64,000 nucleotides of DNA from Octopus sinensis (taxonomy: Eukaryota). Shown here in pieces: positions 5,587-45,979 of this stretch. Position numbers and translations under genes: made by a program. Below the pieces are notes generated by a model. The model worked only from the letters and a program-made list of their open reading frames with translations, was not told the DNA's origin and searched no databases. The stretch lies in assembly GCF_006345805.1 (NCBI RefSeq), contig NC_043007.1:21018001-21082000 (forward strand), written 5' to 3'. Each line of letters starts with the position of its first letter. The stretch's first letter is position 1.

Positions 5587-5671
<85 letters not shown>

Positions 5672-5812
5672 GTGTGTGTGTGTGTATATATATGTATGTA
5701 TATATATATGTATATGTATGTATGTATGTATGTATGTATATATATATGTACATCATCATATATGTATGTATGTACATATATATATATATATATATGTAGT
5801 ATGTATGTACAC

Positions 5813-5844
<32 letters not shown>

Positions 5845-5949
5845 GTATATATATATATATATATATGTATGTGTATATATATATATGTATGTGTATGTAT
5901 ATATATATATGTATGTATATATATATATGTATGTATATATATATGTATG

Positions 5950-6029
<80 letters not shown>

Positions 6030-6690: not shown

Positions 6691-6723
<33 letters not shown>

Positions 6724-6737
6724 GCAAATAAATAAAA

Positions 6738-6778
<41 letters not shown>

Positions 6779-6830
6779 TACATCATATATAAACATACAT
6801 ACATAGATATATGTATAATCACATTATATA

Positions 6831-6861
<31 letters not shown>

Positions 6862-6903
6862 CATATATATATTATATATATATATATCTATATATATATT
6901 ATA

Positions 6904-6945
<42 letters not shown>

Positions 6946-7330
6946 ATATATATATATATATTATATATATATATATATAATATATATATATATATATACA
7001 TATATTACATATATATATATATATATTATATATATATATATATAATATGTGAATATTATGTTTGTATATGTACATATATATATTCATGTATATATTATAT
7101 ATATATTATATATATATGTGTGTGTGTGTATATTATATATATATATATACATATGCACACACACACGAATGTGTATATGTTTGTGTGTGTGTGTGTAATA
7201 TATATATATATATATGCACACACACATGAACGTGTGTATATGTTTATGTATGTGAGTGTGTGTGTATGTATATATACATATATATACTTTATATATATAT
7301 ATATTCCTACATGTGTGTGTGTATCTAGAC
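6680..7330. repeat. (TA)n/(TG)n microsatellite mosaic downstream of the DYRK stop
   Basis: Visible. Confidence 0.9.
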
Positions 7331-7807
7331 ATATACAACAAAATGAACTTAAAAAGACATGAGACCTCGCATAAATAATGGGAAAAAAAAGGGTACAACC
7401 ATAAAAATGATTAATAAATAAATATCATTTTTTTTCTTAAATCACCAAAAAATAATCTTATTCACTGAGTGAGAGGGGGGTGGGGGTCGCAACTAATTAG
7501 GGTTATTCCAAAATGAATAAAAATAGAATTGATTAATCAACAAATTTAAATTAATCAACAGTTTTTTTATGTAATTTTACTGGGTTTTTTTTATAATTGA
7601 CATATTTTTTGGTTACTCTTTCTGCAAAAAGTCAACACAGTTAATAATAATAATTATTATTATAATTATAATAATAATGGTAATGGTAATGGTAATTAAT
7701 AATAAAAAGAAAAGTATAATTTACAAAATAATTATAGAAGTAATTAAAAAAAACCCACACATACATACACACACACTCAGGCAGGCATTCAAAGAAATCT
7801 ATGTCTG

Positions 7808-10252
7808 TTATAAAGTGGATCCTATTTGGGGCAGTTTTGTCCGCGAATTAAACTGGGACGATGTGATGACCACATCGTCCGGAATGATTTGCCTAGTTTT
7901 GTTCCCTGAACTGGTGCCGTTTGCAAGTTTTGGCACGGCACCGTTTCTATTGTTTCCCGTAGAGTTTCTACGATTCAAAGTACCAACATTTGTATTGGTA
8001 CCGTTGTTACCAATCGTTGCTATAGTGGTTGACATGCTGTTAGTGTCTCTGTTTTCATTCGGTGGTGGTTTCGGCAGCCTCCTGCGCAGCCAGGCGTGAC
8101 GAAGAGCCTGGCTGGGAGTCATCCGAGAATTTGGATCCCATTCCAAACACCGACGCATAAAGTCTAAAAATAGGGGATCATCACAACCTTTTAAAGCAGC
8201 CATGATCTCCTTGCTTCCCGGAGAACCTCGAGGTTTACCACGTCGCGACCTGCCACCGTTGATGACACTCGACCCGTCCGGGAGGGTACTTACTGTACAG
8301 TATCTTGGAAATCCTTTGGAGCTAATAAAATTACGAGCTCTTTTAGAATGGTCTAACAGTTTTTGCGGGGGCATTCCCAACATTTCTATGATACATGCTA
8401 GCTGGTCCCCTTCATCTTCACCTGGAAATAATGGGTAGCCCGTAAGAAGCTCGGCCAGGATACACCCGAGGCTCCATATATCAATAGGCATACCGTACTT
8501 ACCACCAAGGATGACCTCAGGAGCCCGATAGAAGCGAGACTGGATGTATGTATAGATCCTCTGGTGTTCATAGCAACTAGAACCAAAGTCTATGACTTTG
8601 ATCCCACTGCGGCCTTGTTGTTTCAGCAAAATATTTTCAGGTTTAAGGTCGCAGTGGATGATGCTGTTGTTATGAAGAGAGTCTAAACATTGTAAGATTG
8701 AATGCGCGAACTTGCGAACAAGCTGTAATGTAAATCCTTGAAATTTGTTCTTCTTGATTAACTCATATAGATTCATGCTTAGCAATTCGAATGTGATACA
8801 TATGTGGTTGCGAAACGTGAAATGTTCCAACATGTGGACAATATTCATGCTGTTGTCTCGATCTTGTTTTTTCAAATGTTCCAAGATTCGAATCTCTTCC
8901 TGTGCCTGTCGGTGGAACCTTTTTTCGTTGCGTACCATTTTCAAAGCAACATGTTGTTGTGCTTTGTGGTCGTAAGCCTTAACCACTTGTCCAAAGCTGC
9001 CCTTGCCGATAATCTTCAGAACTTCATAGCGATAAGCGATGTGATCGTGGGGGACGTGCAGGTAAGATCCGTTTTCGTCGTCGTATCCGTTGTTGTTGTT
9101 GCCACCGACAATACCTTGCCGTTTCTTCGCCGTGGGGCCAACAAAATAAACCTGGGGGTAGTTGAAGATCTCGTGATGCTCAAACGCACTGAGCTTGTTC
9201 ATATATTGCTTCATAGCCGATTCAGGAGATAAAGCATTGTTGTTGTTGGTGCCCACCCCGCCACCAAAAAGCCGTCGGTGATTCGAGGATGTTGTCGTCG
9301 TCGTCGTAGTAGAACTGTGATGGTGTTGCTGCTGTTGCTGTTGATGCTGGTGATTATGGTGGTGGTGGTGGTGGTGGTGGTGGTGGTTCGACGACAACAC
9401 CGACGGTATGCTGCTCACGTTGTTACTTATGGTGGAGCAGTTGAAGTGCGTGTCATGGCTGGAGATCACTTCGCTGTTGTTGCATTCTGGAGGGACATCG
9501 GCAGAGCCATCGAACACACTGACGCTGCTGCTCTTGTTGGATGCAGTGTTCGTGTGAGAGACTTTCGGATTAAAATTAGAAATAGCAGTAGTAGCAGTGG
9601 TAGTGCCGGTTGCAGTGGCAGCAGCAGCGATGAGGGCTGCTGTGATGCTGTGGCCACTGACCGAGCCTTTACTTTTACCTGTTAAGTTAGTGGCGTTAGC
9701 AACACTATTATTATTGTTCACTATGGCACCGGAACGGACAGTGGGCAATGTCGATTTGGGTTGGTGAGAATGAGCACGACAGCAGGTCTGGTGCGCCAAG
9801 TGAGGAGCGGAGTGTTGTTGATGCAATCGATGAGGTGGAAGCTGGTGAATGTGATGCTGATGGTGATAGAAATGCTGTGGCTGGTGTGGGACATGCAGAT
9901 GGTGGTGATGCAACAGAGGAGGACCGGTCAAATCGTTGTTGTTGTTGTAAGCACCGACATGGTTGATGGTGTTTGTTGTGGTGGTGGTAACGTCTGTGAA
10001 GGTGGTGCTACTAACGGCGATGGTGGTGCTACTGTTGGAAGCAAGTGGTGGCGATGATGACGACAAAAAGTGCAAAGGAAAACCTTCAGAAGGGTTGTTA
10101 CACTGATGGCCGGCCGTGGTGATGTTTGTGCTGATGGAGACGGCTCTGGTTCCAGGCGGACTGGTAGTGTTGACCGCTGGACGTACAGAATGAATTGGGA
10201 TAGTGGCTGTAATATTTCCGATTTTGTGGCTGTTGTCGATGCTGGTAGTGTG
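7808..10252 (-). CDS. DYRK2: Dual-specificity tyrosine-phosphorylation-regulated kinase, class II (DYRK2/3 orthologue): kinase-containing frame; catalytic domain about 8087-9028; no intron
   Basis: Translation shows [32 protein letters not shown] (NAPA region), YDDENGSY (DH box), [32 protein letters not shown] and [13 protein letters not shown] (activation-loop YxY), closely matching vertebrate DYRK2 as I recall it. The frame is open from the TAA at 10253-10255 to the TAA at 7808-7810. The ORF-track start at 10075 is TTG; the first ATG is at 9214. Confidence 0.95.
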
Positions 10253-12648
10253 TTAATAATTGTAGCAGTTCCGCAGCTGCTAGCTGTGTTATTCCTTCGG
10301 CAATAGCTGACAGCACCAGCGTTAACAAAATGATAGGTTCTTCGTCCGTCTCTTTCGTAAGCGATTCCTTCTTCAAACCTGTCTTCTTCGATTCCTTCCT
10401 CTCTGCTATGGCAAAGGTTGTAGGGTCGTTGTTGTTGCTGCTGTTGCTGTAGATGCTGTTGCTGTTGTTGTTGCTGCTGTTGTAGCTGTAGTTGTTGCAG
10501 TTGTTGGTGGTGTTTACAGTTGTAGTGTTCCTGCGATTGATATTGGGGAAAAGTAAAGTGTCGGATTTGTTGTTGCTGGTTGTAGCGTTGACGGAAGAGG
10601 CTGAGGTGTTGGTCGTTAACGTCGCCGACACCTCCTCGGTCGCCATTTTGTGGATCGGGCGGCGCAGAAATACGCCGTTGGTCGGCTGCAATGGCCGGGC
10701 TGTGGTGCCGTTGTTGGATGATACTACTACTCTGTGGCGGCTGCGGCTGCGGTGGCGAATCGTTGTTCCCTTTGCTTCTCCTGCTACAGTTGAAACACCC
10801 TTCTCTGGCGCTGCCGGGCTCACCCCTCGCCGCTGGAATGAGCTGCTGCACGTACACGGGAGAGGAAGAGACGAACGACCTCAGTGGCAGTGGTTGCGGG
10901 GGAGACGGGAGGTGGAACCGCGACGGGAAAGTGTGCTGACGACGATGATGATGATGATGATGATTATGCTGCTGCTGTTGCTGTTGGTGATGATGTTGAT
11001 GATGTTGATGGTGATGATGGTATTTGTGACTGTGGTTGTCAGGGTGTAGTAACTGCAGTTGAGGGGGTTCTGTTGTGTTCTGCTGCTGCTGCAGTCTGGG
11101 GGAAAGCTCCTCCTTGGGTAGTGGTACAACCTTCACCGTAAACTGTGGAGATCCCACAACACTGCTGGAATTAGAATTGGAATAGTAATAGCAGCGTTGT
11201 TGATGGTGGTGGTGGCGACCGTGGTGGGTCGTTGGTAATTTCTGATGAGTAGCAAAAGTGGTATCCTGTCTCTCAGGTTGCTGATGTTGTTGTTGCTGCT
11301 GCTGCTGCTGTTGGTATTGCTGAAGGGGACGGGGGAGAATTCTGTGGCAACTGTGTGACAGTGGAGGCGGCGGCGGCGGCGGGTGGTGGTGGTGGTGGTA
11401 AATGACTTGTGGACTGTTACTGCTACTGCTGCTACTATTGTTACTGTTACTGCTGCTATTGTTGTTGCTACTACTGCTGCTACCACTACTACTGTTACTG
11501 GTGATGCCGTAGCTACTGCTGTTGCTACAACTACTACTACCGCTGCTACTACTACTGCTGCTACTACTCAGATCGTCACTAAGGTAACTACTAATGTTGT
11601 GCTTGGTGACTGTATTTCCACAATGACTACTGCTGCTGTTCGTACTACCACAGCAGCTACCACATCGGTTGACCGTCAGATGCGATGTGTTGGGATGGCA
11701 ATAGTAATGGTAGCGTAGATCGTTAGAGTTCCTGCAACCGGGATCAGACGAAGGGGACACACCTAGACGTCTTCCACTTCCTCCTAATAGTATCTTGGCT
11801 CTGACACTGCTGCCGCTGCTGCTGATGTTTCTCCGACTTCCTGCCCAGCTGCTGCTGCTGTTACTGCTGCTGCCGCTGCTGCTGCTGCTGCTCGGGGCTC
11901 TATGAATGATCACCTTACTAGAATTAATATCCTCCTCTAGTCTTCTTCGGCTTCTGGCCGTTTTCCTCAATTCCCTCACTGGATCGCGTGTGGTTTTCTT
12001 CGATGGTCGGCGCTGGCTGCCAGCATTAGTAATAACATTTCTCAGATCTGCTCTGTCTCCGCCACGCCTCCACAACCCGACCACAGAGGAAGAACGACGC
12101 TTGTTTACCGTTTCTTCTTCTTCTTGTTGTTGTTGTGTCGCCGATTCCAAAGTCGGTCTCAGTGATATCGGAGACAACGATGGCAGAGCCAACACTATTT
12201 TCTCATGGGCTGGGTTCGACAAAGAACTCGTACACACACCGCTATCGCAACTTTTACTACACTTAACCACTTTACCATTATTGATGCCACTGTTACTCCC
12301 AGTTGTTCTGCCACTGCTTCTGCTGCCACTACCGTTATTGCAACTTGTCAATGTGGTAGCTTCTTCTTCTTCTGCTTCTCCAATTGAATTTCCGGAGACG
12401 GTTGTTACTCTGGAACAGACAATGTGACTAATGCTTGCGGAATCTGAAGATGCGTCTTCTCGATACGCAATAGATGTCGGCTTCTGGTCATCGAAGTTCA
12501 TGTTATGGGCTGCATTTGAGAGATTAGTGCCAACCGCGTTAATTGTTTGGTTTTCAGAGGCTACATTTAATAATAAAGGACGCAGGTGACGAAGACCGAA
12601 TGTGTCGCAGCCCCAGAAGCCTCCTCCTCTCCTTTCTTTTAGTGCCAT
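9928..12648 (-). CDS. DYRK2: 906-codon ATG-initiated low-complexity ORF (Ser/Gln/His/Asn/Pro runs); probable N-terminal part of the DYRK gene, out of frame with the kinase in this sequence
   Basis: True ATG at 12648. Same strand, GC content and CAA/CAG/AGC repeat style as the kinase exon, which it overlaps at 9931-10252. Joining requires a -1 shift. Confidence 0.65.
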
Positions 12649-44735: not shown

Positions 44736-45979
44736 GTCTGATGATGCGCAGACACGCGCTGAGACTGCGACATCTCCGGCTCTATGTAGACGACGGTGAA
44801 CAGGTGTGGTCGCCGTTTGTGAGGCACGCATTCCCGCAACTCGTCTCCATGACCGAACTGCAGTCGTGGATCAAAAAGAGGCCGAGGAAGGGCGAATGGC
44901 ACCGCGAGTGTCGCGTTGCTCTCAAGCAACTCTGCCGTCCCGGATCGACCTTGAGTGACTTCAACACAACCAAAGCATTCTATAGGGGATTAGTGGAGGG
45001 GAGGTACGACGACGATCTCGGGGCAAACCTGGGCATCAACAAGGAATACCTGACCTGCCTGTTTCAAACAACTTTCGGCCCGGGACCTATGGACAACTTC
45101 CAGAGATCCCTGGCCTGGCGGTGCTACCGAGAAGCGCTACCCATTCGGGATAAGCTCTATAGGCATGGCTCGAGAAACACGGGGCCGACCTGCCGGAGAT
45201 GCGGGCAGAGGGACGAAACCGCTCTGCACGCAATCGTGCAGTGTCCAGCAATTTCCGACCTGTGGGCTTATGTCGAACGACTGCTGTCACGTGTGGGACG
45301 TGTCGGTTTATCAGCCGAGTCTATCGTTAATATCGTCACGCCTCCTTCCTTCAAACGGGAAGGAAGAGCTATTTTTATCATACTGTGGCTATGGCGAAAG
45401 AATGTATCTGGTGGACACGCCTGAAAGGATTAGAGACAACACTTTCCTCTCTGGTCAATCTCTCATCAACTTCTCAAGTTTCACTGAAGAGGAAAGTGAG
45501 AGTAGAGAGACAAGTTTTGTCTAGTGATGTTTTAAAAAAAGATGGGGAATGTAGCAAGGATGGCATGTATGGAATGACGAAGCCATCTTGACTATGATTC
45601 TATGAACAGTAAAATTAATACAGAGAGTTGCTTATTTGCAAAAAAAAAAGAAAGAAATATAACATGTGACTTCATTGACCGAGGTTACCGTGGTCTTTTC
45701 CGTAGGCTTTTCTTTCCACAGGTAACCTCACCTGTCCTCCCTTTACACTTCATATGACATTTCTGTGATTACGATCCCTATTGATCAACTTTTTTTTCCT
45801 CTCCCCTTTTCTTTTTTCCCTCTGCCCCTTTTTTTTTAAATCCTCCCCTTTTTTGTCCTCTTTCTTTCCTTTTACGATCCTTTTGATCGAAAACCAACCC
45901 CCTTTTTTTTACCCAAAAAGAAAAGCTCTACCTTGTAATTTGTTCTGTCTGTGTGCAGCCCTGTGTGGCTATAAAGAAA
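44736..45979 (+). mobile_element. 5'-truncated L1/Tx1-clade LINE: ORF2 C-terminus with zinc-binding (zf-RVT-type) motif, one frameshift at ~45385, and 3' UTR; 15-bp TSD
   Basis: SLAWRCYREALPIRDKLYRHG...TCRRCGQRDETALHAIVQCP...LW (C-x2-C...ET..H...C). TSD CATATCTATCTATCT at 44721-44735 and 45980-45994. Confidence 0.85.

Follow-up and report, generated by a model that had tools for sequence, protein, structure and literature searches.

Two overlapping reading frames of Octopus sinensis as predicted halves of one intron-free DYRK2-type kinase gene, separated at a short A-run

The window analysed here is a stretch of 64,000 nucleotides (nt) of Octopus sinensis DNA (assembly GCF_006345805.1, contig NC_043007.1, positions 21,018,001 to 21,082,000), in which two long open reading frames (ORFs) overlap and form the two halves of one intron-free octopus DYRK2 kinase gene of about 1613 residues. 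All gene coordinates refer to the minus strand of the window, unless marked (+). The first frame, called ORF1, is free of stops from 12693 to 9931, and translation from ATG 12648 to TGA 9930-9928 gives a protein of 906 amino acids (aa); a stop scan over the same stretch found dozens of stops in the other two frames. The second, called the kinase frame, has a TAA at 10255-10253, is then open from 10252 to 7811 (814 codons) and stops at 7810-7808, with 346 open codons before its first ATG at 9214. The two frames share 322 nt (10252-9931), the kinase frame standing in a -1/+2 relation to ORF1. A preliminary description had reported a 906-codon ORF overlapping the kinase frame by about 320 nt, some 345 open codons between TAA 10253-10255 and ATG 9214, and a fusion product of 1612-1613 aa, and our measurements bear out all these values, with 811 + 802 = 1613 codons when the frames are joined at the true junction. 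The features of the locus, with the ratio of non-synonymous to synonymous substitution rates (dN/dS) where it applies, are the following.

7808-12648, minus strand: whole DYRK2-type gene, a single-exon coding region with one frame break, colinear with the ORF of Octopus bimaculoides and sharing its start and stop.
10216-12648, minus strand: N-terminal low-complexity part rich in S, Q, H and N, codons 1-811 of the ORF1 frame, stop-free, dN/dS 0.25.
10215-10217, minus strand: frame break, an A-run of three (GGAAAT) as against four (GGAAAAT) in O. bimaculoides, the sole indel that is not a multiple of 3.
9928-10215, minus strand: out-of-frame tail of ORF1, 95 codons and TGA, open by chance, the protein not being conserved.
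10217-10252, minus strand: 12 open codons of the kinase frame between TAA and the break, not in the coding frame, the orthologue using the ORF1 frame here.
7811-10216, minus strand: last 802 codons of the gene, read in the kinase frame, made up of a conserved linker (10216-9215) and, after it, the DYRK2 catalytic part, with low dN/dS in both.
8087-9028, minus strand: protein kinase domain, by match to Pfam PF00069.
9212-9214, minus strand: first ATG of the kinase frame and start of the deposited 468-aa protein, an internal Met in O. bimaculoides.
10444-10482, minus strand: CAA/CAG stretch of 39 nt missing from RefSeq isoform X2, seen as a 13-aa gap in the protein alignment.

The ORF1 protein is of low complexity, being rich in S, Q, H and N, and a Pfam search of it returned no domain. 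Across the N-terminal coding region run four further ORFs, 110-240 codons in length, at 10098-10823 (-), 10492-11049 (+), 11133-11486 (-) and 11383-11718 (+); they are products of the stop-poor, CAR/AGC-rich composition and not genes.

The kinase frame carries a complete protein kinase domain (PF00069, profile positions 1-263 of 263, E = 6e-60) at aa 409-722 of the 814-aa frame. Its best matches in the PDB are the human DYRK2 structures (3K2L, 5LXC and others), with E of about 3e-233, and DYRK3 comes second; human DYRK2 scores 778 bits, DYRK3 681, DYRK1A 323 and HIPK2/CLK1 about 210, in agreement with the preliminary assignment of the gene to DYRK2. The alignment to the DYRK2 structures begins at residue 1 of the 468-aa part and takes in the N-terminal accessory region. 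GYDDENGSY, resembling what we take to be the DH box, and YTY, matching what we take to be the YxY motif of the activation loop, are both present in the kinase-frame translation. By these matches, the gene is an ordinary DYRK2-subfamily kinase, extended at the N-terminus by a long low-complexity region. No paper found in our literature search mentioned DYRK2 together with octopus.

Because of the frame break, RefSeq has two proteins at the locus: "myb-like protein AA" (906/893 aa), and a DYRK2 kinase of 468 aa that starts at ATG 9214. ORF1 is identical to the deposited 906-aa O. sinensis protein, and the exact 468-aa product from ATG 9214 is deposited in NCBI on the same 77.5-Mb contig. The two-protein annotation is no independent evidence on the break. 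Apart from a 13-residue poly-Q gap, isoform X2 of "myb-like protein AA" (XP_036363096.1, 893 aa) matches the 906-aa form. The corresponding nucleotides, 10444-10482, have direct CTACAG repeats on both sides and no GT donor, and are too short for an intron; O. bimaculoides is without 42 nt at the same place. The gap thus looks like repeat-length variation or a template-switch artefact, and not like splicing.

The intact orthologue came to light only when the 468-aa product was looked up by exact sequence among protein clusters, since it shares a 90%-identity cluster with the O. bimaculoides protein XP_014778285.1 (1525 aa). Other queries were uninformative: the C-terminal third of ORF1 matched only the window's own RefSeq protein in a search whose length window excludes orthologues of 1.5 kaa, while the N-terminal 240 aa of the kinase frame and residues 1-345 of the 814-aa frame found no homologue under the same length window, with poly-Q/H words swamping the candidates. 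XP_014778285.1 begins like ORF1 and ends, with KLPQIGSTL, like the kinase frame. It is coded by one uninterrupted stretch of 4578 nt without an intron (L001:6001-10578; GCA_001194135.2, CM046611.1), as its translation confirmed. The flanks of this locus are colinear with the window from about 25000 down to about 540, with synteny over some 18 kb; this marks it as the syntenic counterpart of the window gene, not a paralogue.

To locate the break, the window at 12648-7808 (-) was aligned by MAFFT with the O. bimaculoides coding sequence. The two are 93.5% identical at the nucleotide level, and 38 of the 39 gaps are multiples of 3. The remaining gap lies in the A-run 10217-10215, where the window lacks a single base: GGAAAT stands against GGAAAAT, and the window reads CAAAATCGG-AAATATTACAGCC as against CAAAATCGGAAAATATTACAGCC in O. 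bimaculoides; which A of the run is missing is not distinguishable. In O. bimaculoides the protein corresponds to the ORF1 frame as far as GAA (10218-10216) and to the kinase frame from AAT (10216-10214) onward. The frame thus changes at the A-run 10217-10215, and the length check is exact, since 1613 codons less a net 88 codons of in-frame indels give 1525. Because one orthologous ORF spans both halves and 38 of 39 indels are in frame, the pairing of the two frames is far beyond chance. The proposal that the two ORFs are one gene split by an indel was therefore sound, and the comparison with other octopuses that had been suggested as a check gave a continuous ORF in O. bimaculoides, relative to which the window is one A short. 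The sites proposed for the indel were, however, misplaced. Removal of one AC at about 10250 and addition of one T in the T-run at 10066-10082 had been offered as repairs; the repeats exist, as (AC)3 at 10253 and T5 at 10069, but fusion at either one misframes conserved codons, and the course of the O. bimaculoides protein places the break at neither. What remains as a mechanism is a one-base deletion relative to the ancestral ORF.

Substitutions relative to O. bimaculoides, counted by the Nei-Gojobori method, agree with this position. From 12648 to 10218, the ORF1 frame has a dN/dS of 0.25, as against 1.0-1.3 for its two alternatives. In the part of the overlap past the break (10214-9931), the kinase frame shows 15 synonymous changes to 1 non-synonymous (dN/dS 0.019), and the ORF1 frame 1 synonymous to 15 non-synonymous (dN/dS 6.1). 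Over the whole of 10214-9215 the kinase frame has a dN/dS of 0.063, with 334 stop-free codons and indels only in frame, and dN/dS falls to 0.011 in 9214-7811. A log-likelihood scan of codon usage places the passage of preference from ORF1 to the kinase frame at about 10290-10260. The substitution counts together with this shift show that the 95-codon tail of ORF1 is accidental and not conserved coding sequence, and the 12 open kinase-frame codons between TAA and the break are likewise accidental. Long-term selection acts on a single ORF.

We propose that an intron-free DYRK2-type gene at 12648-7808 (-) is broken by an A-run, 10217-10215, one base shorter than that of the intact orthologue, so that the sequence upstream is coding in the ORF1 frame and the sequence downstream in the kinase frame. 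The most likely origin of the break is not programmed recoding but faulty sequencing or assembly, or else a very recent mutation. It lies in a homopolymer, and the other indels across 4.8 kb all keep the frame. The sequence after it has not decayed: the 814 codons remain open, their indels are all in frame, and dN/dS stays low over 10214-9215, a segment of 334 codons that is not translatable from ATG 9214. This argues that the break is extremely young or not real. Synonymous divergence (dS) amounts to about 0.25 over the two lineages, which split about 34 million years ago (PMC10700109), so that neutrality lasting longer than roughly 1-2 million years should already show as non-synonymous changes. 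The strong constraint on the kinase part (dN/dS 0.011) also makes fixation of a disrupting frameshift unlikely a priori. Of the two remaining choices, we infer that the long-read consensus probably dropped the base, in preference to a genuine allele, and the feature is most likely not biological.

Several points weigh against an artefact. The difference between A3 and A4 concerns a short homopolymer, and short-read polishing usually resolves runs that short. Where the non-coding flanks align, over about 11 kb, homopolymers differ by one base at 45 places, with the shorter run in O. sinensis at 13 and in O. bimaculoides at 32; this test cannot tell real divergence from error, and by its count no general deletion bias is seen in the assembly. 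The NCBI pipeline produced no frameshift-corrected model at the locus. One-base drop-outs in a short interspersed element elsewhere in the window had been put forward as a sign of an imperfect consensus; they do not show consensus error, and the homopolymer test lends the idea no support either.

The alternative is a real deletion, by which the O. sinensis animal that was sequenced would carry a frameshift allele, very recent or heterozygous; this is possible but doubtful. Truncation would then leave 906 aa of the long protein, the internal ATG 9214 could give no more than a 468-aa kinase, and the long DYRK2 isoform would have been lost or split very recently. The deposited sequence says so, both products are annotated accordingly, the homopolymer test gives no sign of a deletion bias in the assembly, and the 468-aa product keeps the whole region that aligns to the crystallised, active human DYRK2 constructs. 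However, the absence of secondary damage in the open kinase frame, including the stretch that would go untranslated, and of the non-synonymous changes expected beyond roughly 1-2 million years of neutrality tells against such an allele, as does the selection that also acts on the N-terminal half (dN/dS 0.25).

Recoding and splicing, even taken together, are very improbable. There is only a slight chance that the three-A state is both real and fixed in O. sinensis, with the full-length kinase still made by an unconventional -1 event at GAA-A, or with the N-terminal protein and the 468-aa kinase expressed separately; if it were so, this would be a gene fission or a recoding less than about 2 million years old in a deeply conserved kinase. 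Slighter still is the chance that the translating ribosome passes from one frame to the other by programmed -1 frameshifting or some other recoding. Re-reading one A after GAA (10218-10216) would reproduce the KSE-NIT junction of the orthologue exactly, and the 123 nt downstream (10212-10090) fold slightly better than shuffled sequences, with a minimum free energy of -23.1 kcal/mol (z = -1.9). Yet 8 of 200 shuffles fold equally well, and the pseudoknot-free fold predicts no stable stem-loop 5-9 nt downstream and no compact adjoining hairpin. A scan of 10290-9931 in the ORF1 frame found no canonical X XXY YYZ or near-canonical slippery heptamer, so that the overlap offers none in that frame; the only repeats that a repeat scan found in the overlap are T5 and (AC)3. 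To our knowledge, GAA-AUA is not a shift-prone pair. Moreover, the frame break is not conserved, the O. bimaculoides ORF being continuous and ordinary at the site, which leaves no conserved recoding signal. Judged on sequence, the site appears to lack those hallmarks of programmed -1 frameshifting that were tested. RNA editing was rejected as a cause, since in cephalopods it is common but of the A-to-I type, which cannot insert a base. Least probable of all is a short 3n+2 intron whose removal would join the frames: four GT..AG pairs have the right phase (for example 10378/10032, 347 nt), but all four donors are weak (6 of 9 consensus matches), each candidate would remove colinear, codon-constrained coding sequence of O. 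bimaculoides, and the orthologous coding sequence is intron-free. A recoded or alternatively processed kinase, the fallback of the preliminary description, is thus not supported: the break is absent from the orthologue, the overlap offers no slippery site, the downstream fold is weak, and there is no credible 3n+2 intron.

The RefSeq models call for correction: "myb-like protein AA" X1/X2 and the 468-aa DYRK2 together make up a single DYRK2 orthologue of about 1613 aa. The O. bimaculoides protein XP_014778285.1 is itself named "putative uncharacterized protein DDB_G0277255"; this name and "myb-like" probably reflect low-complexity similarity and hide the DYRK2 identity. Uncorrected use of the O. 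sinensis annotation would count a spurious gene and a truncated kinase, also in the annotations built on it for O. vulgaris, a species that diverged about 2.5 million years ago and has a chromosome-level assembly (PMC10700109).

Elsewhere in the window, the region past the kinase stop contains long (AT)n microsatellites and a (TTATTA)n array (1-241, 468-521, 1628-1947, 5590-6016 and 6705-7154; also 898-1244). They yield spurious ORFs of the "IYIYIY" type (e.g., 6811-7362), GC content goes down to 21%, and the O. bimaculoides flank has many places that cross-match with the (AT)n blocks. Among the other one-base gaps of the flanks (about 25000-540, compared with L002), O. bimaculoides is the shorter in 42 of 72; the mild directional one-base bias of the flanks may come from a deletion bias of a lineage or from error in either assembly. 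A 227-aa ORF at 44741-45424 (+) matches the zinc-binding region of reverse transcriptases (zf-RVT, PF13966, E = 6e-8) and is probably a retroelement fragment, the only domain match that a search gave among the remaining long ORFs of the window.

Among known systems, the PEG10-type genes of animals, whose programmed -1 frameshifting is generally known, likewise have two overlapping frames in a -1 relation, whereas the octopus locus shows no slippery heptamer and no conserved overlap, and no clear stimulatory structure in the predicted fold. Human DYRK2 is 528-601 aa long. Its crystallised constructs align end to end with residues 1-388 of the octopus 468-aa C-terminal part, before which the octopus gene has a lineage-specific N-terminal extension of about 1140 aa without a Pfam domain. 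A search of representative proteins with the 814-aa frame gave 150 DYRK matches, none of them a cephalopod protein with a matching N-terminus, and none of the representatives matched residues 1-140 of the query. The top match, P0003, was set aside as a tandem DYRK2 chimera, and the extensions of P0007 and P0009 as unrelated. These two long DYRK2-class proteins (1544 and 1294 aa) nevertheless share the octopus layout, with a C-terminal kinase behind 670-865 low-complexity residues that are not alignable with the octopus extension; a long N-terminal extension is thus nothing out of the ordinary in the DYRK2 class. The closest counterpart is the O. bimaculoides orthologue, which has its ATG and stop in common with the window gene and the same architecture, a low-complexity N-terminus of about 1050 aa followed by the DYRK2 kinase part. 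It is 88 codons shorter through in-frame differences in repeat length, and its ORF is continuous, with A4 at the point where the window shows A3.

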